From Trichosphaerium sp. ATCC 40318 (lineage: Eukaryota; Protista; Tubulinea): a stretch of DNA of 64,000 bases. The notes beneath the pieces are model-generated. The model made no database searches. It was not told the DNA's origin and saw only the letters and a program-made list of their open reading frames with translations. The stretch is from contig JALMLS010000091.1 in NCBI GenBank assembly GCA_038496445.1, forward strand, positions 1 to 64,000, read 5' to 3'. Both the position numbers and the translations under genes were made by a program. Within the stretch, counting starts at the first letter, position 1; each line of letters starts with the position of its first letter. Positions 1 through 44,500 of the stretch are shown piece after piece.

Positions 1-76
1 TTTATTTTATTGGCACATTTATTTTTTTAGGCTCTTGTTTTTTTTTTTGTTTTTTTGGTATGTAAAAAACACTGTG

Positions 77-246
77 TAGGGTGGGGAATTTTGTTTTTTT
101 GGTATAAAAAAAAAACAAAATAGATAATTTATGAGAAGAAAAAAGCCTAAAGAATAAAATTCCCCACCCTAGGCGGAAAAAACTTAAATAAATAGTGGTA
201 TATTTTCTATTATTATACCACTATTTATTTAAGTTTTTTCCGCCTA
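77..246. repeat. Two adjacent stem-loops upstream of nad2 (possible control region)
   Basis: TAGGGTGGGGAATTTT (77) pairs with AAAATTCCCCACCCTA (ending 171). TAGGCGGAAAAAACTTAAATAAATAGTGGTATA (170) pairs with its reverse complement ending at 246. Confidence 0.8.
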
Positions 247-323
247 CGGCAAGTAGTATCGCTATTCGAATAGTTATAATATATATAAGTAAAAAAAAGT
301 ATTAATATAGACTTATATATAAG

Positions 324-1698
324 ATGGCTAATCTATTTTATTTTTATTTAGAAGAGAGATTCTTATTTTATTTTTATTTGGTGATTAATTTTTGGTACTA
401 GTTTACAAATTTGAGGAAAAAGTGCAGGATTCTTGCAAAAGATTTAGGATTATTATGTTTTGTTTTTCAATTTTAAGCTTTAGTTGTGCGCGTTAATGCA
501 GTGATATGACTGGATCAAACTTATTTTGATGCTTCGGTTGTATCTATTTAAAAGTGTTATAGTGTGCTTCTTTTTTTTTTTGACTTCTATGAGGAAAGTG
601 ATTCCTACAATGGTGTTTACTTAATTTATGTATATGTTATGTAGTTTTTTAATATTATCGTTTTCGAGTTGTTGTGTTGTTGAGTTGTTTTAGAATTATT
701 AGAATTTGTTTCTATATTTTATTAAGTGTAGGTCGAATAAAGTTTCTAAATCTGAGCAGCCCTAAAATATTTAATTTTTAATAAATTAGCTCAGGATTTA
801 TTTTTATAGGTTGTGTTATTTTTTGACTTAAGAGTTCATGTGGTCGTATAAGTTTATAGAGTGGGTGTGGATTTTTATATTTGGATGGTTTATTATCGTA
901 GGGTTATCTCTATTTTTATGTGTTTATTTATAAAATTAGGGATATTTCCGTTTAATTTTTGATTGTTGATAGCTATGAGGCAGGTTCTTTGGGGCTTTAA
1001 GTATTTTAACAGTAGTAAGTAAAATAGTGACCTTGATGTTTTTTTGAAAGTATTTTTTGTATTGATACAAATTGAAGAAATAAGTCAATAATAACAGTAT
1101 TTTCAGTTATTAGCATGTGGTTTTTGTATTTTTAGGTGTTAGTCAAATAAGATTAGAAGAATTTGAGCGTATAGCTCAGTGTAAATTTAAGTTATTTATT
1201 ATTAGCATGTAATACTGCATCTCATTTAGTTTTTTATGTATTTTAATTTATTTGGTATTTATATGCTTGTAAGCATGGGTTTTTTTTTAATTTGTTTATT
1301 TTGTTAAGTCATTTACAAAATAGAGTATAGTAAATATGTTAGATTTTTTAAATTTAATCATATAGCGTTTCGTGAAGTATATTTTTTTGATTAAGTTTTT
1401 TATCTGTAGCAGGATTACCTCCGCTAATGGCTTTTTTTCTAAATTTTTGTTAATATCGAGTTTATTAGCGGTAGTGATTGATTACTTGCTATATTTTGCA
1501 TTTTAGTCGTATTTTTGCATTAAGTTTTATTTAAACGTTTTCAAGGATTCCTGTTTGGTAAATTTTGAGGATGAGGCTTATATATAAGGCGAGACGAAAT
1601 ATTTATTATATGTTAGCTTTTTTTTTATGGCTAATATTTTATTTATTTTAATTATGATGTTTTATTTTTATTGATATAGATATGTTAATTTAATTTAA
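324..1698 (+). CDS. nad2: NADH dehydrogenase subunit 2, frameshifted cryptogene
   Basis: Single insertions restore SE(A)ALKY, FIKLGIFPFNFW-VDSYE, IRRIWAYSS and LSVAGLPPLM(G)FFSK. ATG at 324, TAA at 1696. Confidence 0.9.
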
Positions 1699-1702
1699 AT
1701 TA

Positions 1703-3126
1703 ATGACAAATTGACTTTTAATTTTGGGTAATAGGGATTGCGTGTTATTTTTTTAGTATATATAAATGTTATATTAGTTGGCTTTTTTTATTTTATTTTT
1801 TTGTGATACTGAGTTATTTTATATTTTTAGTTACATAGGTAATTTTTTTAGGAGGAACAGAGGATTGGATGTGACGTTTGTCTTATCTTTTCATATTTTA
1901 AGCAGCAGTTTGTTTATATAGGTAAGCTCCTTAATTGGGATCGCAAGTATAGAATAATAGTTTTATTTTTATGCTTTTAGCATAACTTGTTGTGCGCAGG
2001 TGCTTTTTTAGTATATGATCTTATTTTTTTTTATATTATTTTTGAGTTTTTTTAATACCTCTTTTTTTTTTTATAGGTATTTGAGGTACTAAAAAGCGAC
2101 GGTAATAGCATCCTTTAAATTATTTTTATATACGTATTAGGATCTTTTTCTATGCTTATAGGTTAATGTCTTTATATTCTCAAGTGGTACATTTGATCTG
2201 TATACCTTATTTTATATAATAATAGTTTTCAGCGAGATTAGGTACATGTATTTTATTTTTAACAGCATTTGCTGTTAAACACCCATGTATCCATTTCATT
2301 TATGTTACCCGAAGCACATGTAGAGGCAACAACAGTAGGTTCGGTTATTTTAGCAGCTTGATTTTAAAATTAGCTTGTATGGGCTGTGTAGATTTGTTAT
2401 TCTTTGTTTTTTGAATCTATAAAATATATGCGCCTTTATTTTTTGTAATTATAATAATTGTATTTTACATAGTGTATGTTTATCGTGTAGACATGTGATG
2501 TTAAAAAAGCATAGCTTATATGTCTATAGCACATATGATTTTAGTTTGATTGGTTTGTTTTCGTTAAATATAGTAGGTGTGCAAGATGCATTTATTTATT
2601 AGTAGGACATGGTTAGTATCGAGTGGTTATTTATTTTAGTAGGTATTTTATATGATAGTTTAAAACTCGTGTTATTTTTTATTATGGAGTATAAGTCAAA
2701 TAATGCCATTATGGCATTATTTTATTTTATGTTTATTTTTGCTAATTTTGGTTTTCCTGTTTTTTAAATTTTGTGGAGAACTTTTAATTTTTTTTTCTTG
2801 TCTTTATATAGTTTTTTATTAAGTTTTTTTTTATGTTTAGGTATGTTATATCTACAGGGGCTAGTGTATGAATGTATAATAGGATAGTTTTTGGGAAGTT
2901 AAATACGAAGGCATATTAAAAAAGGTTTGAAAAGAAGTCAAAGAGAAAAAAATTGAAGATTAATGGGAGTAGTAGAGGTTGGTTGATTAGTACGTATGGT
3001 CGTACAGATTTAACTTGGCGTGAATTAATATTTTATGCTTTTTATTATGTACCGTGTAATATTAGGAATATTACCATGGTTTGGGAATTCAGCGTTGGTC
3101 ATTTTATACTACTAACAGAATAAATA
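1703..3126 (+). CDS. nad4: NADH dehydrogenase subunit 4, frameshifted cryptogene
   Basis: Motifs FE-VLIPLFFFIGIWG, FAVK-PMYPFHL(W)LPEAHVEA, GSVILA, R(Q)CDVKK-IAYMSIAHM, HGLVSSGLF, YD(R)FKTR, ANFGFP(G)FLNF-GE and DLTWRE. 3' end approximate. Confidence 0.95.
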
Positions 3127-3138
3127 AGCTTACTTATC

Positions 3139-4161
3139 ATGGAAAATTCTAAAATTGTTGATGAAATAATGGAAAAAATGGCACGTTTTTTTTTTGTTTT
3201 TTTTAATTGCCTAAAAAGCAAAAAAAGCAAAGGGGCCTACGTGTCTATACCAGGATTGATATTAGAACCTCAAAATTTAGAGGAGGTTATACATAATAGG
3301 TTCATTTTATTAGGAGTAACAAGTGTATTATTTATAGTTTGTTTAGGTTTTGCTGCAGGTTTTTATTATAATAGTAATAATCATATAATCTCTGTAGATA
3401 TGGACTGTATTGATCAGGTGCTTCGCTATAATTTAGGGTATAAAAATTTAAAAAACGATGTGAATCTTGAGAATTGTGAAGCATATTTTGAACCGCAAAA
3501 TATATTAATATTACCAGCTTTTGAATTTGAAGATCCAGATTTAGATTTAGACGAAAAAATAATTGAGGGAATTTTAGAATTGCAGCAACAAATACCAAAA
3601 GTAGAGGTAGAGTTAGACGTTGCAAGTGAAACAGTAAAAATAATGGAGCAAGCTTTAGAGTCTTACAATTGAGGTAATTATAGAGAAAATATAGTAAATA
3701 TCGAAGATGAACCTACTTATCAAGGGACAGAAAATTTTCAAGGATATAATAATCCAAATTTAGATGAGTTATTGTCAGATGCAATAGCTTCATCTAAATT
3801 TAATGTATCTGATGAACTAGATGATAGTTCATCAGATACATTAAATTTAGATGAAGCTATTGCATCTGATGGTTCAAATGAAATTTTTGAGAATATTGTG
3901 ACTTTTGAGGAAGAAGATTATGGAGGAAAAGATACTTTAGAAGGAATTGACATAGTGTTTCCCGGAGAAAATCAACTGGTAAGGGAAATTGGTGAAAATA
4001 TTGATGGAAATTTATATTGTAGTTATGAAGAAAATATGGTAGGTTGTTATGATTGTTTAAATGAAACTACTCAGATTTTTTTAGATATGGATAATGATTT
4101 TTTTTTATTTGTTGAAATATTAAAAAAAGTTATATATTTTTTAATATCTATTTTTTTTTAA
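3139..4161 (+). CDS. Orphan mitochondrial ORF (340 aa with TGA=Trp), acidic, with a hydrophobic segment; no frameshifts
   Basis: Track ORFs 3139-3672 and 3772-4161 are in the same frame and are joined by reading TGA 3670 as Trp, with no other stop between them. Confidence 0.75.
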
Positions 4162-4187
4162 TATTTTATTTTATATTTTTTATTTAA

Positions 4188-4301
4188 AAAAAGAGAATGT
4201 TATTTGTATTATAAATGAATATTTAAAAAAGATAGTTATTTGTTTATAATTTTTTATAGTTTCAAGGGAAGAAGCGAAATTAAAAATAAATTAAGTTCTT
4301 T
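4188..4301 (+). ncRNA. ~115-nt structured intergenic element, copy 1 (candidate 5S-like RNA or control element)
   Basis: Near-identical to 11262-11375 with 3 substitutions. Folds by eye into a closing stem plus two arms. Confidence 0.35.
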
Positions 4302-4329
4302 ATTTTATTTTTTTTTGTTTTTTAGATAG

Positions 4330-5180
4330 CTTTTATTTTTTTTTTTATATTTAAGTGTTTTTAGGTTTAGCATTGTAGGTTGGTTAAAAGAAGATTTTAA
4401 TAATATAGTTTACATTTTAAAAAAAGAGTAAGACCTATTGTTTTTATTCTTTGTGATTAGGTTACGACGGTTTACGTGTTATAATGAAGCATATAATTTT
4501 AATAGGGCATCTTTAGTGTGTCAAACAGATATTGTGTAGGTATGACTACATGGATGGTTATGTAGGTGGATGTATTTGGATAAATGGTATAGCTAAGTGG
4601 TAATAATTATAGTTTTAATTGTAATGCTGAAGTGATGGTTTTACTGAGTTGCTATAACAAAAGGTTTCTTTATGTTTTGAAAAAAAGAAATTTAGTTTTG
4701 AATTACTAACTAGTGATATTTTTTTAGAGAATTGTTGCGTTACCAAAAAATTAATTTTTTGGTAACGCAACAATTCTCTAAAAAAATACAGAGTAATCAT
4801 CTAGATATTAAAGTTTTTTAAAAGGTTATTTATGTGTTGGAGGATAACGAACAAAAAAAGATTTAAGGGAATGATTTTAAAACTAACATATTTAAATATC
4901 GCTTATTTTTAGGTTGTTTAAACAACCTAAAAATAAGCGATATTTAAATATGTTAGTTTTAAAATCATTCCCTTAAATCTTTTTTTGTTCGTTATCCTCC
5001 AACACAGTTTATTTATTATTTAATAGGGGTTTAGCTGATTTAAGGTATGAATATGCCTTGATATGTTTATGATCAATGGTGATATATAGTTGTTTTGTAA
5101 AACTTGGTTATATACTTGTTATAGTAGTCGTAATGTGTGTTTTATAGTGTTCTCGTTTTATGGAGATCAATTTAATAAAC
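4330..5180 (+). CDS. Probable frameshifted ribosomal protein gene, rps2-like
   Basis: Fragments RPIVFILCD and YVGGCIWING resemble the S2 'ILFVGT' and 'YV..RW.GG' regions. Contains palindromes. Boundaries uncertain. Confidence 0.25.
4717..4788. repeat. Perfect palindrome
   Basis: TATTTTTTTAGAGAATTGTTGCGTTACCAAAAAATT followed directly by its reverse complement. Confidence 0.9.
4833..5006. repeat. 174-bp perfect palindrome
   Basis: Centre AGGTTGTTT|AAACAACCT at 4919/4920. Confidence 0.95.
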
Positions 5181-5204
5181 AAAAATTAGCCAAAATAGAT
5201 CAAA

Positions 5205-8200
5205 TGTGAGGTTTAAGTTAACTTATATGAAGGAAGAAAAGCTTCTATAAACTTGGTTATGTTTATAAATTAAGAATTTTGTGCAAGAAATTTAGAGTTT
5301 TTATATTAATTATAAGTTTTTACGTAAGGGTGGTTTTTAGGTGTTAATTGAGGCGTTTTTTAAAATAGCAAAGTTTTATATTTTGTTTTGCTAAATTTTG
5401 TATTATATTTTGAAAAAATAGGAATAATTTAGTTAGATTAGGGTTGGTAAAATGGAAAATTTAAATCATTCGTTTTCGGTTTATTTTTTGATATTTTAAG
5501 TTTTTTTATACGTGTTTATATTTTTATGTAAAAGTGTTTAGAAGTTTATACCACGTCGTAGTAATCTTTTTGAAAAACTTTATGAAAAGGTAAGCGTAAT
5601 TAATTTTAAGAAAATATCTTAATAGTAAGCAAATTTTGTATTATATCGTGAAATAAGAAACCAGAAAAAATAAGCAATAAATTAAATAAATTACATATTA
5701 GTGGACGTTATAGAAGGTAAAATTGCCTATAAAAAATAAACTTATTTTAAAAATAAATTAAGTTTATTAATTTTGTAAATTTAAATAAAAATATTGAATA
5801 GAAAAAAAAAAGAAAAAAAAAAAAAACGGCGTTTTAAAAACAAAGACGTAAACTTTATATCCCGCTTTATTAAATTTTTATCGATAGGTAAGCGGGATAT
5901 AAAGTTTACGTCTTTGTTTAGTTAACTAAAAGAGAGACGTAAACTTTATATCCCGCTTACCTATCGATAAAAATTTAATAGTAATTAAGTCATTAATTTT
6001 GGGTCTCTTTAATTTTACTAGTAAGAAAAAACCTGGATATTTCTTACTAAGGTTATCTAATATTATTTCTTCGCTGGTATACTTAATTTTAAATTAATTT
6101 AAAATTAAGTATACCAGCGAAGAAATAATATTAGATAACCTTAGTAAGAAATATCCAGGTTTTTTCTTACTAGTAAAATTAAAGAGACCCAAAGGTTATT
6201 TGTGAAAAAAAACAACCTTTGGGTCTCTTTAATTTTACTAGTAAGAAAAAACCTGGATATTTCTTTAAAAAATCGCGATAGGATCTTTTTTAAAGAAACA
6301 AATAAAAGTGAAGGTATAAATACATATCTAAAAGAAACAAATAAAAGTGAAGGTATAAATACATGTTTAAAAGAAAGAAAAGAAGTTAGTTTTAATATTG
6401 ATTTAGTAGGTAAAATTAAAAGTAAAATTAAAGAAAGTAATTTAAAATTATATTTTTTACGTGATATTTTATTAAGTCAAAGTTTTCTTTCTTTTTTAGA
6501 TAGTCAATACACGTTGGACGTACGTCCAACGTGTATTGACTATCTAAAAAAGAAAGAAAACTTTGACTTAATAAAATATCACGTAAAAAATATAATTTTA
6601 AAACCTTCATTGTTTTTTCATAAACGTTACATTAGAAAAAGGTTTTTATTAAAAAAAATAAAAAGAATAGTAAAAAAACCAAGTAAAATATATAAAAAAT
6701 ACTTACGACGTCAGTATTTTTTATATTTTAGAAAGGAAAGAAAAAAAAAAACAAAAAAAAGGAAAGAAAAAATAAAAAAGATAAAAAAAGAACATTATAA
6801 AAAAAAATACATTAAATTTAAATTTTTTCAGAAGCTTCTGAAAAAATTTAAATTTAATGTAAAATATAAAATAAAAATTTTTAATTCTAAAATAAAAATT
6901 TTAAAAACCAAAAAAAGTCAAGGTAATAAAATAAAAAGAATATTAAAAAAAAAGAAAAAAAAAAAAAAGGTATTAAAATTTTTAGTAGGTAGATATACAA
7001 AAGGTTATTTTAGAAAAAAAAGAGCATGAGATCGCAGGCAAGAAAGAATAAAACAAAAAAAAATTGAAAAAAAAGAAGAGATTAAAAAAAAAAGAAAAAA
7101 ATTTTTTAAAAAACTTAGGAAAAAAAAAAAAGCAATAAAAAAAGAGATTAAAAAAATAATAAAGCAAAAAAAAAGATATAAAAAAGAGATTAAGAAAATA
7201 AAAAGAAAATATAAGTTAAATAAACTTATGATATTAATATTAAAAAATAAAATGATTAAAATGATTAAAAATTTTAATCATAAGTTTTTTAAATTTTTAG
7301 TTATTAGAAAAAAAAGAAGAATCAAATTTAATATAAAATCTCTTCTTTTTTTTTATTATGTTAAATTGAAAAATAAAAGAAAAAACGTAGAACAAACTAA
7401 GTATAAAAATTTAATGAGATTTTTATACTTAAAAAAAAAAAAAGAAAAAAAAAAAAAATTAGAAAGCTTAAGAAATTTAATTTATAAAAAAAGAGGGAAA
7501 AAAGTAAAAGAAGAAAAAAAAAATATATATAGAAAAATTTATAAAAATTATTATAATAGTTTTTATAAAGGATGAATTTTAAAAGCAAACAAAAAAAGAA
7601 TGAAACGGAAAAAAAAGAATGAAAAAGAAAAAAAAAGTGTTAGTTTAAAAAAAAATTTAGAAAAAGAATGGTTTTGATATGGGATACGTAAAATACTAAA
7701 AAAAAAAAAAGCAAAAAAAAAAAAAGAATGAGGATATATTTTAGGTACAAAATGGCGTAAAAGATTAAAATTAAAAAAAAAAGAAAAAAAAAAATCAAAA
7801 AATAGAAATAGAAGATTACAAGCATGAGTTTTAATAAAAAAAAAGTGAGGTAAAATAAAGTATAAAATAATAGATAATAAAAAAAAATATATTAGATTTT
7901 TAAAGAAAAAACGATTGTTAAAAAAAAAACGTTTATTAAAAATAAAGAAAAATAAGGTATTAAATAAGAATGTATATAAAAAAAGAAAAAAAAAGTGGAG
8001 AAAGTATAAATATATTAGTAGAAAGAAGCGTTTTGCTATGTTGGAAAAGGTTAATAAAAAAATAAATAAATTTTGAAAGCAAAATTTATTTAAAAACAAA
8101 GCAACTAAATCTTGTCAAATAAAATTAAATACGTTTAAATCAAAAGGTTTATGGAATCGTAAAACGTTTCGCTAGACGCTTTTCCTAAATTTTAGGAAAA

Positions 8201-10600
8201 GCGTCTAGCGAAACGTTTTACGATTCCATAAACCTTTTGATTTAAACACAAGGTTATCTTTTAAAAATTTTATTTTGAGAAATCGACTTTATTATAATAA
8301 AGTCGATTTCTCAAAACGTAAAAAAGCTGGGGGATTTTGTTAAATAGTCAAAGCTTTACGCATACGTTTGACAATACGTTGCATAAAAGATCGTGCTGCA
8401 TTAGAAATGCAGCACGATCTTTTATGCAACGTATTGTCAAACGTATGCGTAAAAAAACTGGTTATTTAAATTACGAAATAACTTAGCATACCTTTGAAAA
8501 GGAAATTTTGTAAAATTTAAAAAATTTATATCAAAAAGACGGTGACAAAATAAAAAATTTTATAAAAAATGATTATTTGGTAGCAAAAATCAATGTGTAA
8601 ATTTTAAAAAAAATAGAAATGTAAGATGATTTCTACCTAATAGTTAAAATTAAAATCATTTGGAAAAAATTGATTGTTTTTTAATGAAAAAAAAAAATGA
8701 AAAGAATTTTATAGAAAATTAAGATATATTTATGGTGAGGATCGTAAAGATAGATTATTTTGAGTATGGCGTCATTGAATAATATTTAAAAATAAAGGTA
8801 GAGCCAAACTATTGCAGTTAATACGTCGTAAATATAAACATAGTATAGATATTTATGGTTTATGAAGACTTATAAAAAAAATAAAATTAAATGCTTTTAG
8901 AGAAAAAGAAGGTAAACGTAAGGAAATAAGATTTATTAAACAATGGTTCAAATGAAAAATAAAAAGACCAAAAAAGTTACAACAAATAATCTAGGTTTTA
9001 ATAATATGATGAATATATTAATACGTTCTACTCTTTTAGCGAGGGACAGCTTATATTATAATAAATTAATTTGAAGTTTAGATAAAAGTGGAAAACTATC
9101 GAGAAAAATTAAATATAATCTTTGATTAAAATATAACAAAGGAAAAAAATGAAACGAAAAGAAGATAAGAACTATATATTTAAAAAAATTAAGAAATAGA
9201 CGTATTAACTTTATAGAGAAAACGTTTAATGGGAGATTATTTAAATCATTTTTTTGAAATAATTATTTAAATAATAAAAAAAGGTTTACTTTAAAAAAAA
9301 CTAAAAGTTTAAAAAGAGGAAAAAAAAATAATTATTTCAAAAAAAGTCAAATAAAAGCATGAAAATGAGCAAAAATAAAAAAAAAGAGAAATAATAGGAG
9401 AGGTTATGGGAAAAGATGAAGAAAATTTCGTATAAAAGATAAAAAGTTAATTTATAAATTAAAAAAAAAGGAAAAAAAAAGAAAAAAAAAAAAAATAATA
9501 AAAAAAGGAAAGGTATATAAAATAAGGTCTTTTAAGAAAATATTAAAGATATATAATCTTATTAGAAAAAAACTAAAAAAAAAAAAAGAAAAAAAAAGGA
9601 AAAAAAAAAAGAAAAAATATGATAAGGTATATTATTATAATTATATATCTTATCTATTGAAAAAAGGTATATTTTCAGATATAACTAAAAAGAAGCGTGA
9701 ATTAGCTTTAAAAATTGGTTGTGTATTATCCTTAAAATCTAAACGAGCACGTAAATCACGTAGAAAGCTTTTACGTAAATTTTTAGCTAAAGTAGCTCGT
9801 CTATCTGATAGACGAGCTACTTTAGCTAAAAATTTACGTAAAAGCTTTCTACGTGATTTACGTGCTCGTTTAGATTTTAAGGATAATACACAACCAATTT
9901 TTAAAGCTAATTCACCAAGGTTTTCTTATATAAATACTTTAAATGATTTTAGAAATTATCGTTTAGTTTTAAGTGAAGGTTTTGAACATAGCAGGCTTAT
10001 GTTCTTAATTTCTTTACGCAAGGTTTTTCTAGAAAATTTTGAATGTGATTGAAACGGGAGGAAAAAAAAAAAAAGAAGAAAAGCAAAAGCTGATTAAGCC
10101 GAGCAATTGTCTTCATGATTTTAAAACCTGGTTTTTTACATGTAAAAAACCAGGTTTTAAAATCATGAAGACAATTGCTCGGCTTAATCAGCTTTTGCTA
10201 TAAATAGAAATAGATTATGAATAAAAAGCTAGTAAATAATCTATTTCTATTTATAGCAAAAGCTGATTAAGCCGAGCAATTGTCTTTAAAAATGAAACTA
10301 GTTCAATTTAAAAAAATATATAAAGGTGATTTTAATTTAGGAAAGGGTTGTATTTATTTTTTAATTCTTTTTGAAGAAACTTAAGGTTAGTGTTTATGAT
10401 ATAAATATATAGACTGAAAAAATGTAAAATGAATTAATATGGTGATTTTTTTTATAACGACATAAGACACGATTTTTATGTGAATACGTACTATTTATAT
10501 ATAAATAAAGTATAAATTGATTTGTTTTATTGTTAGTTTTGTTTCTTATATTTTTGAAGATCTATATAGTTATATGTATTAGGTTGAAGTGGGTTTGTTT
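5205..10600 (+). CDS. Giant Lys-rich coding region, possibly rps4 with a very large insertion
   Basis: N-terminal fragments YKLRILCKKFRVF and LLNFVLYFEKIGII-VRLGLV, and C-terminal LKVSVYDI and IKYKLICFIV, resemble S4 motifs. Uninterrupted TGA=Trp frames run 6202-8175 and 8943-10097. Confidence 0.35.
5838..6264. repeat. Serial fold-back repeats including a 196-bp perfect palindrome (5998-6193)
   Basis: A/A'/A arrangements of GACGTAAACTTTATATCCCGCT and TTTGGGTCTCTTTAATTTTACTAGTAAGAAAAAACCTGGATATTTCT. Confidence 0.9.
6202..8175 (+). CDS. Continuous 658-codon Lys/Arg-rich frame (TGA=Trp)
   Basis: Read codon by codon. ORFs 6202-7029 and 7228-7575 and downstream sequence share one frame, interrupted only by TGA, until TAG at 8173. 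Confidence 0.8.
6291..6368 (+). repeat. 39-bp in-frame tandem duplication (KETNKSEGINT x2)
   Basis: AAAGAAACAAATAAAAGTGAAGGTATAAATACAT occurs twice. Confidence 0.9.
6441..6602. repeat. 162-bp perfect palindrome inside an open frame
   Basis: Centre GACGT|ACGTC. The same peptide is encoded on both strands (track ORFs 6202+ and 6428-). Confidence 0.95.
8133..8453. repeat. Three consecutive palindromes (8133-8247, ~8273-8316, ~8355-8453)
   Basis: Reverse-complement arms read directly from the sequence. Confidence 0.9.
9697..9915. repeat. 219-bp palindrome in frame within an ORF
   Basis: Centre CTATC-T-GATAG at 9806. ORF 9657-10052 reads through it. Confidence 0.95.
10082..10286. repeat. Palindrome followed by a second fold-back copy
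   Basis: AGCAAAAGCTGATTAAGCCGAGCAATTGTCTT appears forward, inverted, then forward again. Confidence 0.9.
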
Positions 10601-10746
10601 TTCATGTATAGATCTTCAAAAATATAAGAAACAAAACTAATAAATAATAAATTTAAATTAATTTGGTGTTTTTATTATAAGGAAGGTAATAAATTGTATA
10701 TATTTCTAAATTATATTTAAAAAAGAAAATATATATAAGTAATTTA

Positions 10747-11199
10747 TGAGCTTATTTAAATTTAAAATAGGCTATCTTTATCTTTAAATGCTGGTATAGT
10801 TGAGTATTATTGCGTTATAAATTGTTTTCATTTAGTACTTTATTTAGGAAAGAAATCATAAGAACCGACGTTAAAATTTGTTTTTTATAATTTTATATGA
10901 GAGGAGTTTTTAAATTTAATCGAGATATAAATATAAAAATAATGCAAATTATCGTTTAAATTTTTACGTCAAAAAGAGATTTAAAATGATTTGAAAAAAG
11001 AAGTTTTTTATAGGTAAAATCAATGAGATTGAACGATACGGGGCGTGTATTAGGTATATTTTGAAATTCAGGGCATGTGGTATAAGAGGCCTATACAAGA
11101 TTATGTGTAAATTTTTATATAAATAAAGAGACGTGAAGTTTAGTAAATCTGAGCATTTAATTTTTTTCTTTGATAGCTTAAGTAAATCAAGTGTATAAA
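10747..11199 (+). CDS. Unidentified, probably frameshifted mitochondrial gene (ribosomal-protein-like composition)
   Basis: ATG at 10747 followed by short basic/hydrophobic frames broken by frameshifts. No motif securely recognised. Confidence 0.25.
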
Positions 11200-11261
11200 T
11201 AATTGACATTTATCTTTTGTTTTAAAAGATTTATTCCAGAAAAGTAAAAAAAATGTGAAAA

Positions 11262-11375
11262 AAAAAGAGAATGTTACTTGTATTATAAATGAATATCTAA
11301 AAAGGATAGTTATTTGTTTATAATTTTTTATAGTTTCAAGGGAAGAAGCGAAATTAAAAATAAATTAAGTTCTTT
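11262..11375 (+). ncRNA. ~115-nt structured intergenic element, copy 2
   Basis: Direct repeat of 4188-4301, lying just upstream of nad3. Confidence 0.35.
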
Positions 11376-11435
11376 AAATTTTATATTTTTTGTTTTCTAG
11401 TAATTTTAAATATAAAAGATGCAATAATAAATAAA

Positions 11436-11777
11436 ATGTATTCATTTTATATAAGTTTATTTGTGTTAGGAGTGCTTTTTTTTGAGTTATATTACTATAT
11501 GGATGTTCATATATATTGGTTTATAGAGTTATAGTAAAGCAAAATTATCTCCGTATGAATGCGGTTTTTAATGAATAAAAAACCACGGGTAAATTTGAAA
11601 TTAGATTTTTTGTGGTAGCATTATTATTTTTAATCATGATTTAGAAATAGTATTGTTGTTACCTAGTGTATTAGGATTTTAAGTTATGACTTTTGAGGTT
11701 ATATAGTTTACTTGAATTTATCTTACTTTTATTCTTAGGTTATGATATGAATGATTAATGTCTGCAATAGATGGTAA
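11436..11777 (+). CDS. nad3: NADH dehydrogenase subunit 3, frameshifted cryptogene
   Basis: KLSPYECGF, KFEIRFFVVALLFLI-DLEIVLLLP and WYEWLMSAI(E/D)W-stop. Confidence 0.93.
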
Positions 11778-11806
11778 ATATAAAAAAAAGTATAAAAAGA
11801 ATTAAT

Positions 11807-12420
11807 ATGTTAGATAATTTTATTTGGTTTATAGTTTTTTTTATACCATTTGTAGTATGATGTTTATAAGTACAGCGTGTTAAGGTTAATTAATTTAATT
11901 TTATTTTATGTAGTGTAGTTATATGGTTATTAGTTAATGATTTAGTTTTTTTGGACTTGTGTTAGGGTCGTATATATAGGCGCTATTTGTATCTTTTTAT
12001 TTTTGCTATAATAACAATTTATGATAAGTTACTCGTATATATGGTGAAATATATAGTAAACTTTTGTTTGTTTAATTTTATTTATATATTATTATTAATT
12101 TGTGTTGCTTTTATAAATTATAAGGATTAATTTCTGTATACGTTTTATAGAAGAAGAGCTTCAACAAGTTGTAGGGTTGCAGCTCAAGAAGTATCTACTG
12201 AAACTTAAATAAATCTTTGCAACTAGTGAAAATTTATTTAGTTTTTTTACTTTTTATGTTTAATAGGTGGTTTAATTTTATTAATAGGTATTATTGTACC
12301 ATTTCATTAGTTTTTAATAATAAACCTAATATTATAATAATAATGAATTTGCCTGAAGTATATAGAACGTAGAGGGATGTTTTAACTTTTAAGAAAGAAG
12401 AAATAAAGAAGAAAAAAAAA
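11807..12420 (+). CDS. nad6: NADH dehydrogenase subunit 6, frameshifted cryptogene
   Basis: VYIGAICI and GGLILLIGII(G)TISLV. 3' end uncertain. Confidence 0.8.
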
Positions 12421-12424
12421 AATA

Positions 12425-12720
12425 ATGAGATCCCCAAAAAAATTCCGTTTTTTAAGTTAAAGATCTTAAGATTTTAAAAAAAAGTATACATAAAGCGAAA
12501 AATTTAATTATGTTTTTATAGAAATATTATTATTTTTAAGTGCTTATTGGTAATTATTATAGTGTTATACAGGACAAAAGTTTATTATATATTTGTTAAA
12601 CCAAATATGTATGGTTTAAATATCGTGATTTCTTCTTTACAAAAAGTGAGGTTCTAGAATACATAAAAAGAAGATAAAAAATCCAGTAAGGGAAAGTAAA
12701 AAGAAGAGGTCGTTTAGTAA
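12425..12720 (+). CDS. rps19: Ribosomal protein S19, frameshifted cryptogene
   Basis: MRS.KK.PFF, then YRNIIIFKCL-GNYYSVYTGQKFI..VKPNMYGFKYRDFFFTK, matching the S19 pattern. Confidence 0.75.
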
Positions 12721-13690
12721 TCCTCTGTGTTTTAGATCCAATTTTTGATTACTTGAGATGATGTTTATTACGTTAAGATATACATTATGCAATTTGTTTT
12801 ATAGTTGTTTGCGGCTCGAAACTTTGTAAAAACAATATTAAGTGAGATTGGCAGCGTGGTAGAGGTTGATTATAGATAATATAAATATTGTTTATAATCA
12901 AGTGATAATAAATTAATAGGTGTTGTTATTGTTATCATGGTCTTATATGACATGATGTCTTCGGCGGTTAAAAATCGTGTACGATTTTTATGAGATATAA
13001 AGCTTGTATGCGTTATTTAAGATCTTTTTGCTGACGTTATTTTTAAAAGAAGTAAAATGATCAGGTACTTTAAATTACGTATTTTTATAAGAATTTAATT
13101 AAAGCAGCAGTAAAAAAGCATTAGGGAAAAGGCGAAGCTAGTTACTATTTATAGAGTTTACAATTAATGATGTGAAGTATAGAAGCAAGGCGAGTGTATG
13201 GGGATATGATTTTATTGGTGAAATTTTTTTATGGTTAAATTTTGTAGTTTTTTTCTCGTGCTTTGTTATCCAAAAAAGTAAGTTTAAAGTTGATTTTTTG
13301 GATAACAAAGCGTAAGTGCAAGATTTATGTCGTGTTTATGGTAAAGCGTTTTGATCAAAAATATAGTTATAAGAAATGTTGAGTACTATGAAAGGGAATG
13401 TTTTAGGTTAATGTTTAATTGAGGATTATAGAAGGTTTTAAATTTAATTTAAAGGTCGTTTTAAAAGACGTCAAAAAAAAGTGAATTTATGTTTTTTGAA
13501 GGTAAATTACATTAAGTACTGTTACAGGCTATATAGATTATGGTTAATTATTTGCCTTTAAAATTTAGTATAATGGGTGTTAAAATTTGATGTAATAAAC
13601 CTATAGGATGGTGTTACAACCAGTGTGTTTAGTGCAAATATGGTATACATCCAAGAAAAATATATGCATTTAGAAAAGATTTAAATTAAA
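12706..13690 (+). CDS. rps3: Ribosomal protein S3, frameshifted cryptogene
   Basis: GRL-NPLCFRSN..TWDDVYY at the N-terminus, and KGRFKRRQK, GKL-LSTVTGYIDYG and MGVKIW at the C-terminus. No ATG is visible at the start. Confidence 0.8.
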
Positions 13691-13721
13691 ATAAAATATA
13701 AAGCAAAGAAAAACGTGACAT

Positions 13722-13853: not shown

Positions 13854-13913
13854 GAGAAAACGACGTTTTTCTTTTTTCTTTTTTGAGAAAAAAAAAACAC
13901 CTTATAATAATAA

Positions 13914-16255
13914 ATTTTTCTTGGATGTATACCATATTTGCACTTAAACACACTGGTTGTAAACAACCATCCTATAAGGTTTATTCATCAAATTTTAACA
14001 CCCATTATACTAAATTTTAAAGGCAAATAATTAAACCATAATCTATATAGCCTGTAACAGTACTTAATGTAATTTACCTTCAAAAAACATAAATTCACTT
14101 TTTTTTGACGTCTTTTAAAACGACCTTTAAATTAAATTTAAAACCTTCTATAATCCTCAATTAAACATTAACCTAAAACATTCCCTTTCATAGTACTCAA
14201 CATTTCTTATAACTATATTTTGATCAAAACGCTTTACCATAAACACGACATAAATCTTGCACTTACGCTTTGTTATCCAAAAAATCAACTTTAAACTTAC
14301 TTTTTTGGATAACAAAGCACGAGAAAAAAACTACAAAATTTAACCATAAAAAAATTTCACCAATAAAATCATATCCCCATACACTCGCCTTGCTTCTATA
14401 CTTCACATCATTAATTGTAAACTCTATAAATAGTAACTAGCTTCGCCTTTTCCCTAATGCTTTTTTACTGCTGCTTTAATTAAATTCTTATAAAAATACG
14501 TAATTTAAAGTACCTGATCATTTTACTTCTTTTAAAAATAACGTCAGCAAAAAGATCTTAAATAACGCATACAAGCTTTATATCTCATAAAAATCGTACA
14601 CGATTTTTAACCGCCGAAGACATCATGTCATATAAGACCATGATAACAATAACAACAACACCTATTAATTTATTATCACTTGATTATAAACAATATTTAT
14701 ATTATCTATAATCAACCTCTACCACGCTGCCAATCTCACTTAATATTGTTTTTACAAAGTTTCGAGCCGCAAACAACTATAAAACAAATTGCATAATGTA
14801 TATCTTAACGTAATAAACATCATCTCAAGTAATCAAAAATTGGATCTAAAACACAGAGGATTACTAAACGACCTCTTCTTTTTACTTTCCCTTACTGGAT
14901 TTTTTTATCTTCTTTTTATGTATTCTAGAACCTCACTTTTTGTAAAGAAGAAATCACGATATTTAAACCATACATATTTGGTTTAACAAATATATAATAA
15001 ACTTTTGTCCTGTATAACACTATAATAATTACCAATAAGCACTTAAAAATAATAATATTTCTATAAAAACATAATTAAATTTTTCGCTTTATGTATACTT
15101 TTTTTTAAAATCTTAAGATCTTTAACTTAAAAAACGGATTTTTTTTGGGGATCTCATTATTTTTTTTTTTCTTCTTTATTTCTTCTTTCTTAAAAGTTAA
15201 AACATCCCTCTACGTTCTATATACTTCAGGCAAATTCATTATTATTATAATATTAGGTTTATTATTAAAAACTAATGAAATGGTACAATAATACCTATTA
15301 ATAAAATTAAACCACCTATTAAACATAAAAAGTAAAAAAACTAAATAAATTTTCACTAGTTGCAAAGATTTATTTAAGTTTCAGTAGATACTTCTTGAGC
15401 TGCAACCTACAACTTGTTGAAGCTCTTCTTCTATAAAACGTATACAGAAATTAATCCTTATAATTTATAAAAGCAACACAAATTAATAATAATATATAAA
15501 TAAAATTAAACAAACAAAAGTTTACTATATATTTCACCATATATACGAGTAACTTATCATAAATTGTTATTATAGCCAAAAATAAAAAGATACAAATAGC
15601 GCCTATATATACGACCCTAACACAAGTCCAAAAAAACTAAATCATTAACTAATAACCATATAACTACACTACATAAAATATAAAATTAAATTAATTAACC
15701 TTAACACGCTGTACTTATAAACATCATACTACAAATGGTATATAAAAAAAACTATAAACCAAATAAAATTATCTAACATATTAATTCTTTTTATACTTTT
15801 TTTTATATTTACCATCTATTGCAGACATTAATCATTCATATCATAACCTAAGAATAAAAGTAAGATAAATTCAAGTAAACTATATAACCTCAAAAGTCAT
15901 AACTTAAAATCCTAATACACTAGGTAACAACAATACTATTTCTAAATCATGATTAAAAATAATAATGCTACCACAAAAAATCTAATTTCAAATTTACCCG
16001 TGGTTTTTTATTCATTAAAAACCGCATTCATACGGAGATAATTTTGCTTTACTATAACTCTATAAAACCAATATATATGAACATCCATATAGTAATATAA
16101 CTCAAAAAAAAGCACTCCTAACACAAATAAACTTATATAAAATGAATACATTTTATTTATTATTGCATCTTTTATATTTAAAATTACTAGAAAACAAAAA
16201 ATATAAAATTTAAAGAACTTAATTTATTTTTAATTTCGCTTCTTCCCTTGAAACT
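13914..16255 (-). repeat. Inverted copy of 11332-13661 (nad3, nad6, rps19, rps3)
   Basis: Reverse-complement match throughout, with a handful of 1-3 nt indels. The nad3 copy lies at 15809-16151 (-). Confidence 0.95.
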
Positions 16256-17510
16256 TTGAAAACATAAACAAAAGTGAAGTGTACCATTGACCAAAAGTTT
16301 GGTTGGTGTCCATTGTTGACATTGCTGGTATTGCTGACAGAGCCTGTACTTTTGATTAGCTTCTTTTCACCAAAAGAACGTAATAACAACGTACGTTCTC
16401 CGTCTAAACTTCACTTTAAGCTATTTTTGTGCGAAAGTAGTTGTCATATTGACTAAAACTTACATCCGTTTGTTCCATGACTTTATTGCACAGATATCTT
16501 TTTTAGCTTCCTTAATACCAAACTGCACCGTAATTTTAAGATAAGATTTAATACTTGGCTACCGTACCGTCAATCTATTGCATTGCATCAACAATAAAAC
16601 TTCGTTTTTTCCATGGCTTCCTCCAAATCCTCGTTTAACTTAAAACATTTTACGAAAAATTGCGAATTTTAACATAAGATTTTTAACACTTGGCTACTCC
16701 TCGCATACGTTACATTAGCATTGCATCAAGCGTAACTTCGGTTTTCGTTTCTTTCCTAAATAAACGACTAAAGATAAAACAATTAGTACGTAAAAGAGAA
16801 CTTGACACCTGTCAGTTACACATTCACATCGTCCTATACGTTACATTTGAATCAAGCAATAAATTAACTTTGTAATATATTTTCCATCCTTAATACAATT
16901 TAGAACAACACTTTTTGTTAGTCTTAAAAAGAAACACACAACGTCCGTTAGCATCTAACAATATTAGATTTGAAGCAATAAAAATTTGTAAATCGTTTAC
17001 GATGATACACCAACCAGACGGCCTATTACGATTTTTAGCGACTTTCATAGTTCTTCAATAAAATTAAGTCGTCAAAAAAAAAATTAAACACCATCAACTC
17101 TTATTACTTTATTTTGATTAAATCTAGTAGCGTATTGACTGTAAAATCTTGCTTAAGTCCGTTACAAAAAAAGATAGAAATTACATTCATCTTTTAATGG
17201 ATTCTTCTACAGTATTGATACGGCAGACTGTAACCGTAGTTCTTCAAAAAGACATGGACAAATTAAGATACAACCCGGTTCCACTTTTAAACTACCGGCA
17301 TACAGATCCTTTAAATTGAACGAGTACAAACTAAAGATAATTGCCCGTTAATCGTGCTTTTGGCATAAATGAAATAGTTTCCCACTACTTTTTTGATACT
17401 GTAAACTGTAAAGCAAAAGCTGCTTAAGCGAAATTGTGCATCAAGATTTTACAATAATGGCCTTTTTAGAAGATTACAAAATTAGGCTTAAAGTATTATT
17501 TAGCAATTCA

Positions 17511-39028: not shown

Positions 39029-40974
39029 TCAGACGTTTGATGCAATAAGCTTATTTGCTGAAAGTCTGTTTGCAAATACATTTGCTACAACACCTTCTAA
39101 TATAACGCCTAGAAGTTGAAAAATATAAGTACAAAGGATACTTGCATCTAATAAACAAAAAAAGGTCCATCATAAAATAAAAATGTTTTGTCACGTAAAC
39201 ACCCAAACGCTACGCGTAAAATAGATTTTTGAAGTATTTGTCTCACATCACAAAAAAAAAAGAAGGAAAATCTGAGTGTCGGACATACTTATTTGTTTTG
39301 AATCAATTGCACATGTAGGATGAACAAATATTCTTGCTCCACCTTTAGTATGAGTGCCAAAGGCCATATGTTTCTTTTTAAAAAACCCAAGAGCCTACAA
39401 GACACGTTAACAAGTGAATACTCCATAAAAATGAAACACAGTTGAAATAATCGTTATTGTAATCGTAACGCTCTCAATAGTAGCGGAAAATGATCGAGTA
39501 CCTCAGAGTAACTACTACCAGTGTATTCAGGGTATGTTTTACGTAATGTATCACCAGCTTTAATACGCTTGTTTAACAGATCAATTTTGTTTAGAAACAG
39601 CACTACGATAGTTGTGCCACCAAACGTATCTCCTGTTACGAGCTATTAAAAGAATAAACGTCAGTAGTCTGTCAACTTTTTTTTGAACAAAAAAATCAAA
39701 ACGTTTTTCTCGCTTACCTGTTTCCAAACATCGATAGATTCCTCTAGTTTAGTTTGCCCAGGTGTGTCAGATTGCACATCCCAGCAATCAATAGCAGAAA
39801 CGTAAATGGTAGCACGAACAGCACTAAAACAAGAAAAGTTAGTGTTTTGAGACAGAGCACGTAAAAAATGTCCTAAAACGCACTCTGTAAAACAGTTTAT
39901 CCATTTCCTACGTTCACTTCTTTGACCACCAACGTCTATGACGTTCCATGTAAACCTAAATATACCAATAAGATAATGGTGAGGAGATAAAGCGCCAAAA
40001 TAGCCAAGAAAAAGAGTAAAAAGAGTAAAACGTTTCGAAAGTTGCAGTTTGGCGCAAAATATTTACCTATCCATTTTAAACCCGGTCTCATCAACTCCAG
40101 TAGATACAATGCCAGTAGTACGTTGTCTAGCAAGCAGCATATCTTGTGTTGAAGGAATCCAATCCTTATTTATGTCAAGACCTAGCCAGTGCTCTAATGT
40201 GAGCACGGTACTATCTCTATCAATTTTACATATCTGGTATGCAGCTTTAAACCCTTGTTTTTGTGTTAATCCAATTTTAAGCACAAAAGTCTTCAAATAG
40301 CCTTACCAACGTCAGAAAATATCTGTTTACATGCTCTAATCCTCTCATAAGCTCCTTCTTCGTCATCAAACATACCAAAAGCGTTTGTGCTTGTGATTAA
40401 ATCTCTTAGGTGTTTATTTTTCCTCTTCGTTTTAAGTCCTCTCTCTGTTGCCTTTGTTAACACTAGTTGCGTTGCGGCTATAATATTGCTGCAAATAATA
40501 TTTTTGGTTGTTTTTCTGTCATTGTCTGTGAATCCTCCTGCAAAGCGTAGGCGCATCTGTTTAACTAATATGTAGTCAGATTTAAAAGTTATTACGGAGT
40601 TGAGTTTTTTAAACTGAATCAGAATTACCGCTTGTGGTGTTTAGTTAAAAAAAGAACGATTTGGCTACTAGTTGCACTAACACACTTTTTTAGGAAGACT
40701 GTGAGCGCAAATTCGTCAAATAGCCGCAAAACTTGTCGTTAGCGTAATAAACGCTCTTGGATGCATTATGATGAGAAAAAGTAGTTTTGGGTTGAGCGTT
40801 GTGGTTTCTAAATTGAAAACAAAAAGCAAACGTACCAACAGTAGATTTACCACCAGAGCTTGTTCCAAGCATTAGAACATTTATTGTTTGAGCTCTTAAC
40901 TTCTTTGTTGCGCGAAGCTCCTCGCTAATTTCAACATGACGTGAATTCCGCTTACCAGATCCCAGAGTGCACAT
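39029..40974 (-). CDS. Heterotrimeric G-protein alpha subunit, multi-exon
   Basis: LMLGTSSGGKST, LARQRTTGI, DVGGQRSERRKWINCF, LFLNKIDL and TCAIDS. Confidence 0.93.
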
Positions 40975-41563
40975 GCTGCTTATTGGTCTAAGATTAGAAA
41001 ATTATAATACAGAGTTTGACTGCTTTGGTCAATTTGAGTTTTCTACAACTAGTTTTTCTTTCTAACCAAGTGCGTACGTTATATTGGTAGACGTTAAACA
41101 TGCATAAAGCAAAGACTGCCAAAAAGGGAAATAAATGTACGAACCACACGTTCACAAGTTCCTATTATCTTGAATTGGGTTACTTTTTAACGTTGCATTA
41201 AAGGTGCGCTGCTTTACAGGACAGTTTTGTCTGTTATGCAAGTGAAGATATCCGGAAAAACCAAAACAGTATTTAATGCAGGTGAACTACCTCTTTTCTT
41301 GATATCTCGCCTAAAGCACGTACTAGCTCAAGGAATGTATAGGAGCTACGTTATTACTGTTATATTCAACTTACACCAAAACGATATAAACACACAGTGG
41401 GTGGGCGCGAAGTGGCTATTGTCACTCATTTTTGAATTCTATTTCTAGCTTTTGTGTACCACTCTATTAAGAGTATTTTTACCCGAAAACACAAAAATGT
41501 TAACTTGATTTCTTTTTATGGCCTGACAAGGCGAAAAAATTGTCAGGTTTTTTTTTTGGTTTA

Positions 41564-44500
41564 TTATTTCTTTACAGCAGAGCTGTAGTGATATTGTACA
41601 TTACTTGAACTATTACGACGAAGTTCATGTATAGGTGGAGTCGTATGTAAGTATTTTTTAATACTTGCTTTCAAGTCCGATAGTCTCACAGGTTTACAAA
41701 GAAAGTCGTTCATACCTAAAGGTGATGTGAGTAAGAAAAAAACAAGAAAAAGTTATTATAAGTTACCAAAATTTTTTTGGTTTTCTTTTTGATTCACAAG
41801 GTACGTACCAGCTTTCAATGCAATTTTACGCTGCTCTACTACTGCATGTGCTGAAATAGCAATAATAGGTGTGCGAATACCTGCATCTCGCATCTTTTGC
41901 GTTGTTTCTATGCCGTTCAGTATAGGCATTGAAATATCCATTAATATTAAATCAAACGATTCTAAAAAAAAGAGGTAAATTCAGGGTTTCCAACAAAACC
42001 AGTACAGCAATGCCACATACCTCGATAAACAATATCAAGAGCTTGTTTACCATTCATAGCGAATGTAACACCTTTTATACATGAGATACCCCGTAGCATA
42101 CGCTTGAGTATAGTTTGATTCACAATATTGTCCTGTAAAAGAGAAAATCAACAACTTGAGTTTTAGTAGCAAATAATAAAAAAGTCTGCTCATGACATAC
42201 CTCTGCTACAAGGACTCTATACTGACCAGGTTTATGTGGAGGCTTACTTACTTTGGCACTCCGAGCTCTACCTAAGAAAACATAGATGAGTAATTGCTCA
42301 ACAAAGTGCAATGTAAAACTTGACAGTCGAAAGAAAGAAACTATGTATTGTGACGTACTCAGGCCAACTATTGTATGTGGAGCCCCTGGACCACTAAATG
42401 ATCTTATTGGTTTAGGCCCTTCAGGCACCATCATTGTGTGCTCTACACGTCCAGTCAATTTAGTCAATTTATTCAATTTATTCGGTTTATTCAATTTTTT
42501 CACTAAAAGACGAATAAAGACAAAGAATGGATTGAAAGAATTTGATCCAAAGAAAGAATAATTAATATTTACGTACCTGATGCTGCCTTTCTCAGTTTTC
42601 GTTTAGAAAACTGACTAGTAACTAGATGCTCTTTATATGGTAAGAATGCATAAAAAGTGCAACCCTTTTGAGCTCCAGCACTAAAAACCTTTGAGTTAGA
42701 ACCAAAAAAAAAAACCAAGAAACTTTCGAGAAACAACAAGAAAAATCAACATACCTGTATAAATATAGACTACCTCCCATCGCCTCACAAAGACGCCTTA
42801 CAATAGTCAATCCTAACCCCGTACCTCCGTATTCTCTAGGGGTTGACATTTGGGCCTGTAGTTGTATTAGTCAGATATTAAAGTATTTATGACGTGTGGC
42901 CGTTCTTACCTGTACAAATGGTTTGAATACATCCGCTTGGCTCTCTTTTGAAATACCGATACCTAAGTCACGCACATGAAAGCGCATGTATAGTTTAACG
43001 CCCTTTTTAAGGTACTTTTTGATTTTCTTCGGAGATATTTCTGGAAGATTTGGTAATGCCTCGTTAAGGATATGATCATCACCAGGTGTATTACGAACAA
43101 TGGAAGCACCAATGGTGACATAATCACCATCATTTGAGAACTTTATGGCGTTTGACAAAAGGTTGATCAAAATTTGTTTAATACGATATCGATCGCCCTA
43201 GGTTACGTATATTGTTAGTAATTACTCTGTAGTACATACCAAACAAAATGGGAACATTGTAGATTGATCTTACCTTGAAATAGTGAGGTGCGCTTGACGG
43301 TACGCTTTTTTGTAGATTAATATTCATCTTTAACGCTTGTGGCGCTACAACACCACATACATTCGATAGGATACTATAGATATGTACAGTCCCTTCTTCT
43401 ATTCTTATATTACCAGCTTCTATCTTGCTTACATCAAGTATATTGTTGATAATATGCTAAAGCAACAAACCAAAGAGTAAGTAATCACTTGTCTTTGTAA
43501 GGAAAGTCAAGAAAAAAAAACAAATAAAAAACGCACGAGTAGACTTTGTGAGCAGTTAAGTACGATTGATATGAACTTATCCATATCACTCGATACAAGT
43601 GATGTATCTTGCATAATGTCTATAGCACCAATAATACCAAATAACGGCGTTCTGTAACAAAAAAAGTCAACAAAAAAAAATATGGTAACAAGAAGCCGTT
43701 TTTGGCTGTTATGCCTGTTTACGTGTACCAAAAATGTTGTATTAGTTTACGCACCTTATCTCATGACTCATCTTACATAGAAAGTCCGTTTTATGCTGAT
43801 TTGCAAGCTTGAGTTCTCCCATCAGTTTTTTTTGTAGAGTTTGAAAAATTATGTTTAGAAAGACAGTAAACACTAGAGTCTCCCATATCATTATTGATAG
43901 TTCACTACTTCAGGATTAAGAAATAAAGCGCTAACAAGTTCGTAAAACTTACGGTGATGTATCAACACCCACTCTACGCAACTGGTATGTGCATAAGAAC
44001 CCAGCTAAAGTGCCAATAGAAGAAACTACAACTGGTATATTTTCGTTCGGAAACGCTACAACTACGGTTAAAAACACGTACGACGCAATTGGCAAATTAG
44101 GAATTATAATCAACCCGAGCCCGAGTTGTCAGAAAATGGTTTACACTACGTACGTAAAACGCAGCCGGGTAGTTGCCAAAACACGACAGAGTGCAATAAC
44201 CAAGTGTTTGAACTCCCAATGATGATGGTTCGTGCTAGGGAGTTCGCCCAATAAAGGAAAACTAAGAAAATGCCTATTTGCAAGTCAGGTTGTTGCGTTA
44301 TGAGTTTATAGTTATCATACCAGATGTTCGCGTATTTATTTTAGCGTGTTCTATTATGATCGACACTGTTGAAGCAAGAATAAGTTCCAGTGCATCTAAT
44401 CCAATTGACAGATACGTCTCACTTCTGTACAGTGCATAAACGAACTTGAGAACGACAAATAGAAGCCAACATCGACTTATACTTGATTGGGCCCAAAGAT

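Follow-up and report, generated by a model that had tools for sequence, protein, structure and literature searches.

Six frameshifted genes in a mitochondrial block

We analyzed a stretch of 64,000 nucleotides (nt), hereafter the window, which comprises positions 1 to 64,000 of contig JALMLS010000091.1 from Trichosphaerium sp. ATCC 40318 (assembly GCA_038496445.1). The window begins with a mitochondrial block in which nad2, nad4, nad3, nad6, rps19, and rps3, all located on the + strand between 324 and 13600, are confirmed to be truly frameshifted in the DNA, and we describe below the insertional RNA editing, dominated by G, that restores their frames. Bases 1-13700 have a G+C content of 17-28% with a + strand that is strongly G-rich relative to C, the sense strand of the block being poor in C (8%). 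In a three-frame translation, the NADH dehydrogenase motifs jump between frames. The frameshifted genes (cryptogenes) and one further edited region are the following:

324-1673, + strand: nad2 cryptogene, starting at ATG 324; 508-1673 aligns to NuoN (score 186, versus 57 for the control) and to a diatom-type Nad2
1685-3052, + strand: nad4 cryptogene, from alignment and profile; about 38-54 missing-base sites
4359-5790, + strand: edited region, gene or genes without match; RNA contigs with extra letters
11424-11824, + strand: nad3 cryptogene; NuoA alignment, z 6.4; 10 frameshift sites; PYECG motif
11804-12382, + strand: nad6 cryptogene; alignment to the Nad6 of contig L001, z 7.6; 18 frameshift sites
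12428-12679, + strand: rps19 cryptogene; RpsS alignment, z 9.4; 9 frameshift sites
13419-13599, + strand: C-terminal part of the rps3 cryptogene; RpsC alignment, z 6.0; GVKIW motif; the gene starts somewhere past 12680

The genes were located with a custom protein-to-DNA alignment in which a codon may lack one base or have one too many, using as references proteins from E. coli and from L001, an unrelated diatom-type mitochondrial contig found by pattern scan, and reversed or shuffled proteins as controls; the z-scores of nad3, nad6, rps19, and rps3 (6.0-9.4) are relative to shuffled proteins. An earlier interpretation of this DNA made from its letters (the sequence-only reading) had named the same six genes, and every one of them was found in this way. 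In the case of nad4, positions 1739-3052 align with a score of 663, versus 99 for the reversed protein, and the E. coli NuoM gives 390 versus 77. In the initial nad4 alignment, 54 codons lack a base and 3, all in the poorly conserved N-terminus, have an extra one, and a profile built from 112 diverse Nad4 proteins placed 38 missing-base sites in 1775-2910 with zero in-frame stops. Twenty-seven of these 38 sites fall in 2045-2850, where about 25 had been counted before.

For the rest of the block, 4100-6200 and 10050-11450 were compared with 55 reference proteins and no gene was identified, none of the proteins matching within 4359-5790; beyond some marginal matches (z 3.7), the comparison gave only a weak signal for the N-terminus of rpl2 at 10795-11009 (z 5.0, from 8 shuffles). 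Among 150 Nad4 database representatives, none exceeds 47% identity to the nad4 of the window, and a profile search seeded with window fragments, which MAFFT had stacked on each other, retrieved relatives of L001 only. The HLWLPEAHV pattern of nad4, with or without an extra base, had no match in viral contigs and a single metagenome match, L001 itself (JACCEE012610867.1), which was rejected as a relative because it is an unrelated and unedited diatom-type mitochondrial genome; named diatom Nad4 proteins share 67-68% identity with the Nad4 it encodes. Another unrelated and unedited mitochondrial contig, L004 (from ERZ26694059), carries tufA, atp1, and rps10 and served for reference proteins only; for the L004 gene used, the translation disagrees with the stored protein.

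The missing bases are present in RNA-type contigs

Contigs from four public sequencing runs were aligned to 300-6200, two of which are DNA-type (X1 and X3) and two RNA-type (X4 and X5). X1, with a depth of 584, is probably the assembly's own sample, X3 comes from another study, and X4 is independent, from 2015. The X1 and X3 contigs listed on 300-5980 show 0 gaps, apart from one contig with a 6-letter insert at 3984, and the high-depth X1 contigs (584x) show 0 differences to the window. The bases are thus absent from the DNA itself in 300-5980, as the sequence-only reading had asked to be confirmed, and their lack there is not an assembly error.

The RNA-type contigs, in contrast, contain the missing bases across 300-5790. 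A 3619-letter X5 contig (record 22) places 3561 letters over the 3475 bases of 300-3774, that is, 86 extra letters in 86 gaps, and the density is about one insertion per 32 nt, compared to the break about every 30 nt that had been proposed. Over 4359-5790, X4 and X5 contigs carry 18, 25, 8, 11, and 15 extra letters, where the DNA contigs carry none. In all six gapped RNA contigs (+86, +8, +11, +15, +18, and +25), the number of extra letters equals the gap count, indicating insertions only and zero deletions, which bears out the claim that the breaks are always missing bases. The RNA contigs over 3468-3730 and 3868-4046, which lie in an intact open reading frame (ORF), have 0 gaps.

The two kinds of run can also be tied to one strain. 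X3 (DNA) and X5 (RNA) have in common the private variants 761 C>T, 3552 C>T, 3729 A>G, and 4064 A>T, the insert at 3984, and variants at 5471 and 5591, from which we conclude that they represent a single strain, whose DNA lacks the insertions and whose RNA has them. A separate strain with intact genes is thereby ruled out as the origin of these RNA contigs. GAAAGT at 3984, the one insert of more than a single letter, is in-frame within an acidic ORF and marks the X3/X5 strain off from that of the window; since the DNA run X3 has it too, it is a strain difference. For each single-letter insertion listed, the depth in X1 and X3 is 0, except for a repeat variant at 4255 that is present in X1 DNA as well.

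The listed letter differences that are seen in X3 DNA or in both RNA runs are likewise strain differences, and the mismatch clusters found in X5 only (1782-1804 and 2760-2769) arise where the alignment has shifted next to an insertion. Neither account explains two isolated differences of X5 alone, 1097 G>T (X3 DNA has G) and 5291 T>C, although the first may represent an inserted U that was scored as a mismatch. At each listed site, all of the X5 depth is edited, and the assembly yielded no unedited contig, bearing in mind that contigs drop rare variants.

Near-identical mitochondrial DNA occurs in runs filed under at least 7 organism labels, and in wastewater and marine metagenomes, with at least 3 haplotypes among runs X1-X21 over 300-6200. 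It follows that the organism is widespread, that it often accompanies or contaminates other samples, or that its data are filed under more than one name.

The inserted base is mostly G and copies its neighbor

The bases inserted were read from 12 listed indels out of 133. Ten of them are RNA-only single-letter insertions, namely G behind 355, 461, 487, 511, 539, 555, 590, and 2657 and A behind 375 and 425, and in 10/10 cases the inserted letter is identical to the next template base. The mismatch clusters at 1782-1804 and 2760-2769 resolve to three more G insertions, at 1781, 1805, and 2759, each beside a G. The 13 readable sites are therefore 11 G, 2 A, 0 C, and 0 U, with a lone G (outside a G run) at 9 of the 11 G sites, and no dinucleotide insertion occurs among the indels listed. 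These insertions repair the frame: unedited, 324-612 has 3-5 stops in each frame, and the nine insertions at 355-590 (7 G and 2 A) turn it into a single 99-codon frame from the ATG at 324.

Since the RNA-type contigs hold the missing bases, the DNA-type contigs do not, and 11 of 13 sites are G, we take the extensive G-dominated insertional RNA editing to be real. The claim of G insertion thus stands as regards the dominance of G, and a system restricted to G does not, given the two A insertions in RNA.

Homology provides secondary evidence in the same direction, restricted-base alignment models separating the bases only modestly. The single-base models of nad4 score 993 for G, 946 for A, 918 for C, and 897 for T, and 1049 if any base is allowed. 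At six sites with invariant residues, no other choice does as well as a G next to a G (1876, 2356 in LAG, 2373 in KLG, 2585, 2689 in YYGG, and 2759 in FPG), while a purine is required at 2304 (Trp) and 2657 (Arg), and a C beside a C fits 2402 (Pro). The G sites previously proposed at 2304, 2356, 2373, 2585, 2657, 2689, and 2759 are thereby upheld by the profile, with G seen in RNA directly at 2657 and through a mismatch cluster at 2759, and G at 756 and 1430 is compatible with the sequence on direct reading. The G that had been placed in TTT-(G)TT with no adjacent G is not required in that position: at about 2048, a G beside the G of GAG also restores the frame. Applying the neighbor-copy rule to the 18 decisive homology sites gives G 9, T 5, A 3, and C 1, a noisy inference. 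The editing is not limited to G, as A is seen in RNA and homology points to C at 2402 and possibly to some U.

Unbroken reading frames and genetic code

Three long ORFs of the block are free of frameshifts:

3124-4158, + strand: intact 345-codon ORF, acidic; TGA as Trp; in RNA contigs, unedited; no Pfam family
6148-8172, + strand: intact lysine-rich 675-codon ORF; no frameshift; no Pfam family; internal control against homopolymer error
8940-10094, + strand: intact lysine-rich 385-codon ORF; no Pfam family; perfect palindrome with 109-nt arms at 9697-9915

All three are unbroken despite abundant A and T runs. They have no homologues and no Pfam family, and no contigs encoding the products of four intact ORFs are on record. 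A homologous-protein search with ORF 3139-3669 gave no match, under a length filter that would hide a full 345-residue annotation. Unedited Gs are plentiful in the transcribed ORF 3124-4158, where roughly 150 G runs are left without insertions, which indicates that the editing is site-specific.

In the genetic code of this mitochondrial genome, TGA encodes Trp, judging from the TGA codons at conserved Nad4 Trp columns (2080-2082 and 2867-2869, profile Trp score 12) and from the one at 3670-3672 within ORF 3124-4158.

The block is rich in perfect palindromes, whose arms measure 45-109 nt and whose loops measure 0-5 nt; they are found at 3775-3869, 4833-5006, 5998-6193, 6441-6602, 8133-8247, 8355-8453, 9697-9915, and 10082-10199, several of them within intact ORFs with the frame kept. 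The short-read contigs of all four runs end at the palindromes 3775-3869, 4833-5006, and 5868-5980, the three that are well covered within 300-6200.

Inverted copy, repeats, and nuclear DNA

Beyond the mitochondrial genes, the window contains two further parts:

13900-16273, - strand: inverted partial copy of 11314-13700, about 1% divergent, followed by nuclear DNA
16274-64000, no strand assigned: nuclear DNA, G+C 33-41%, with LRR, F-box, MORN, Gpi16, G-alpha, and histidine-kinase exons; outside the editing system

The last part is taken as nuclear because of the exons it carries. A heterotrimeric G-protein alpha subunit and a histidine kinase (with HisKA and HATPase motifs) are encoded there by intron-split nuclear exons at 39664-41001 (- strand) and 42874-43456 (- strand). 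No rRNA genes, tRNA genes, or Rfam families were detected across the 64,000-nt window.

The mitochondrial-to-nuclear junction lies at about 16266-16273, beyond the inverted copy, and the fold-back has its hairpin center at about 13790, with the similarity of the arms lowest near the center (93%). The mitochondrial block joined to nuclear DNA may represent a nuclear insert, perhaps a recent one, or a fold-back assembly chimera or mis-join. The two arms (11314-13700 and 13900-16273) differ at about 20 positions, mainly in homopolymer length, so that some of the breaks in 11300-13700 may be polishing errors. In nad6, the inverted copies differ by one G within a G run at 12004 and at 12174; at 12004, the second copy has its extra G at the very point where a G would join two frames of the first copy. 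The difference at 12004 may stem from faulty polishing, or the base may be encoded in one copy and not in the other.

A dispersed repeat is found at 4162-4326, 11248-11397, and also 16191-16273, and the inverted duplication ends at the repeat copy at 11314. The X1 depth at 4255 reaches about 2600, and an A insertion is present in part of the repeat copies, which together indicate that the repeat is multi-copy; it is possibly a recombination site.

Proposed mechanism and alternative explanations

The closest known system is that of the heterolobosean amoeba BB2, whose mitochondrial RNAs receive 475 single-nucleotide insertions (84% G, 7% A, 5% C, and 3% U; PMC5421314; Yang, Harding, Kamikawa, Simpson, Roger 2017, Genome Biol Evol 9:1161), the inserted nucleotide being always beside an identical encoded nucleotide (PMC5421314). 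We consider it very probable that the genes described above are mitochondrial cryptogenes to which, about every 32 nt, one nucleotide identical to its neighbor, usually G and sometimes A, is added on expression, restoring the frames. In the most likely mechanism, the mitochondrial RNA polymerase, or a partner factor, would read one template base twice at specific sites, and the insertion would take place during or immediately after transcription, as proposed for BB2. The co-transcriptional timing, the polymerase stutter, and the manner in which sites are chosen are inferred.

Several points weigh against this interpretation. The proportion of 85% G comes from 13 sites only, with a 95% interval of roughly 55-98%, and T at 5 of the 18 decisive homology sites implies that U insertions may exceed their share in the RNA sample. 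The assignment of the runs to DNA or RNA consists of software guesses ('RNA?', 'DNA?'), and contigs mask rare variants, and hence possible partial editing or low-level intact DNA copies. Finally, the window's own copy could be a nuclear insert or an assembly chimera.

Among the alternatives, the one that best survives has the same outcome produced after transcription, by cleavage, addition, and ligation, with guide RNAs or site-specific proteins specifying the sites as they do in kinetoplastids. No motif was seen by eye around the ten listed insertion sites, so an external specifier is conceivable, and this is all that speaks for this route. We regard it as unlikely, given that X5 shows edited depth equal to total depth at every listed site and no unedited contig, that the inserted base always copies its template neighbor, for which a re-read is the simplest account, and that in BB2 the authors found no guide-like matches and only 0.33% of the sites unedited (PMC5421314).

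In another scenario, the block would be a decaying nuclear copy of mitochondrial DNA, with the transcripts coming from a separate intact mitochondrial genome, as the junction with nuclear DNA near 16273, after an inverted partial duplication, might suggest. This is very improbable, since the window is identical to the 584x DNA contigs and no X1 or X3 DNA contig has the inserted form; moreover, decay predicts insertions, substitutions, and stops rather than 86 frame-restoring single-base deficits, and the X3 DNA has the private variants of the X5 RNA yet lacks its insertions. Sequencing or assembly errors, such as bases dropped from long reads, are hardly credible as the origin of the missing bases: the differences between the inverted arms show that local polishing errors exist there, but two separate DNA-type runs match 300-5980 without gaps at depths of up to 584, the ORFs of 345, 675, and 385 codons are intact despite A and T runs, and every break is in one direction.

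Editing of the myxomycete type, as in Physarum, with mostly C and dinucleotide insertions, would account for the similar density (about one per 25-32 nt), the unedited ORFs among cryptogenes, and the C-poor sense strand. It is nonetheless scarcely tenable, with C at 0 of the 13 sites read, a C-only nad4 model (918) below those of G (993) and A (946), invariant Gly, Trp, and Arg codons that require a purine, and only two single-G sites in the entire Physarum transcriptome (PMC3152335). Lastly, an absence of editing, with the ribosome shifting frame at each break by programmed frameshifting or bypassing, has in its favor the frameshifts themselves only and can practically be dismissed, as the extra bases are physically in RNA contigs of two independent studies, a refutation if the RNA-type runs are RNA.

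Comparison with known editing systems

Paramyxoviruses, in the P gene, and filoviruses, in GP, have one slippery A(n)G(n) tract per genome that gives mixed products. As in the present case, the G (or A) added by the viral polymerase is non-templated and repeats the template base beside it; here, however, the sites are many, mostly lone Gs, and seemingly fully edited. In kinetoplastids, the editing consists of U insertion and deletion directed by guide RNAs, with many partly edited molecules, and calcaronean sponges also insert U. These systems resemble ours in that added nucleotides restore the frames of mitochondrial RNA, and differ in using U only, whereas we find no U at the 13 sites read and no deletions in the RNA contigs; no search was made for guide RNAs.

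Myxomycete editing resembles the present system in that cryptogenes are repaired about every 25-30 nt and all of the breaks are missing bases, and Physarum also has unedited ORFs of no known function between its cryptogenes. Nevertheless, Physarum inserts C, with just two single-G sites in the whole transcriptome (PMC3152335), and myxomycetes in general insert C, some U, and dinucleotides, without the need of a neighbor match and, as shown experimentally, co-transcriptionally (PMC3152335; PMC10048350). Here, C is found at 0 of 13 sites and no dinucleotide among the indels listed.

The sequence-only reading had presented G-dominated insertion as mechanistically distinct from the systems it named. 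Such insertion is not without precedent, as BB2 already has it (PMC5421314), and the present pattern fits every BB2 feature that is testable here. In both, the insertions are of single nucleotides only, G is foremost (84% in BB2, 11/13 here) with A second, the inserted base is identical to the adjacent encoded base, and the sites lie mostly outside homopolymer tracts. The editing, near complete in BB2, may be so here too, as far as can be seen from contigs, which drop rare variants. The order nad2 then nad4 is common to both. In BB2, the editing extends to mRNAs, rRNAs, and tRNAs alike. The reading had further mentioned frameshifted mitochondrial genes in discosean amoebae, for which no paper was found in the literature searched.

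The source organism is not BB2 itself, as indicated by site density, gene order, base composition, and the TGA code. Insertion sites are about three times as dense here (1 per 32 nt, versus 309 sites in 40 protein genes of BB2). All four ORFs without known function are edited in BB2, whereas here no insertion is seen in the single long ORF that RNA contigs cover, and the frames of all three such ORFs are intact. The gene nad6 follows nad3 here and overlaps cox1 in BB2, and the A+T content is 72-83%, compared to 70.1% in BB2. TGA encodes Trp here, whereas the characterized heteroloboseans use the universal code (PMC7900873); together with the several exons of the one nuclear gene read (G-alpha), this points away from known heteroloboseans. 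Papers citing the BB2 study reveal no further organism with such editing in the literature searched, which was thin on subscription journals, and a 2025 review gives 'heteroloboseids' alone for neighbor-copying G insertion. We advance as a possibility, somewhat short of an even chance, that the window represents a second known case of this editing, in a lineage unrelated to BB2, where it would have evolved independently and reached a Physarum-like density.

If the lineage is indeed unrelated to BB2, this second known case would be far richer than the first. Neighbor-copying G insertion is the least understood mitochondrial RNA editing, described in one organism in the literature searched, and the present system adds about three times the site density, an unedited transcribed ORF (3124-4158) beside edited genes, and two more intact ORFs. 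It also implies that DNA by itself does not suffice to annotate the mitochondrial genes here. At least three natural strains, namely that of the window and X1, that of X3 and X5, and that of X4, already have DNA and RNA data in the public domain, and the gain and loss of sites among them could reveal what marks a site; combined with the contrast between edited and unedited genes, they might show how the polymerase or its partner is told to re-read bases at thousands of defined places. The comparison with BB2 thereby bears on whether this mechanism had a single origin or arose repeatedly.

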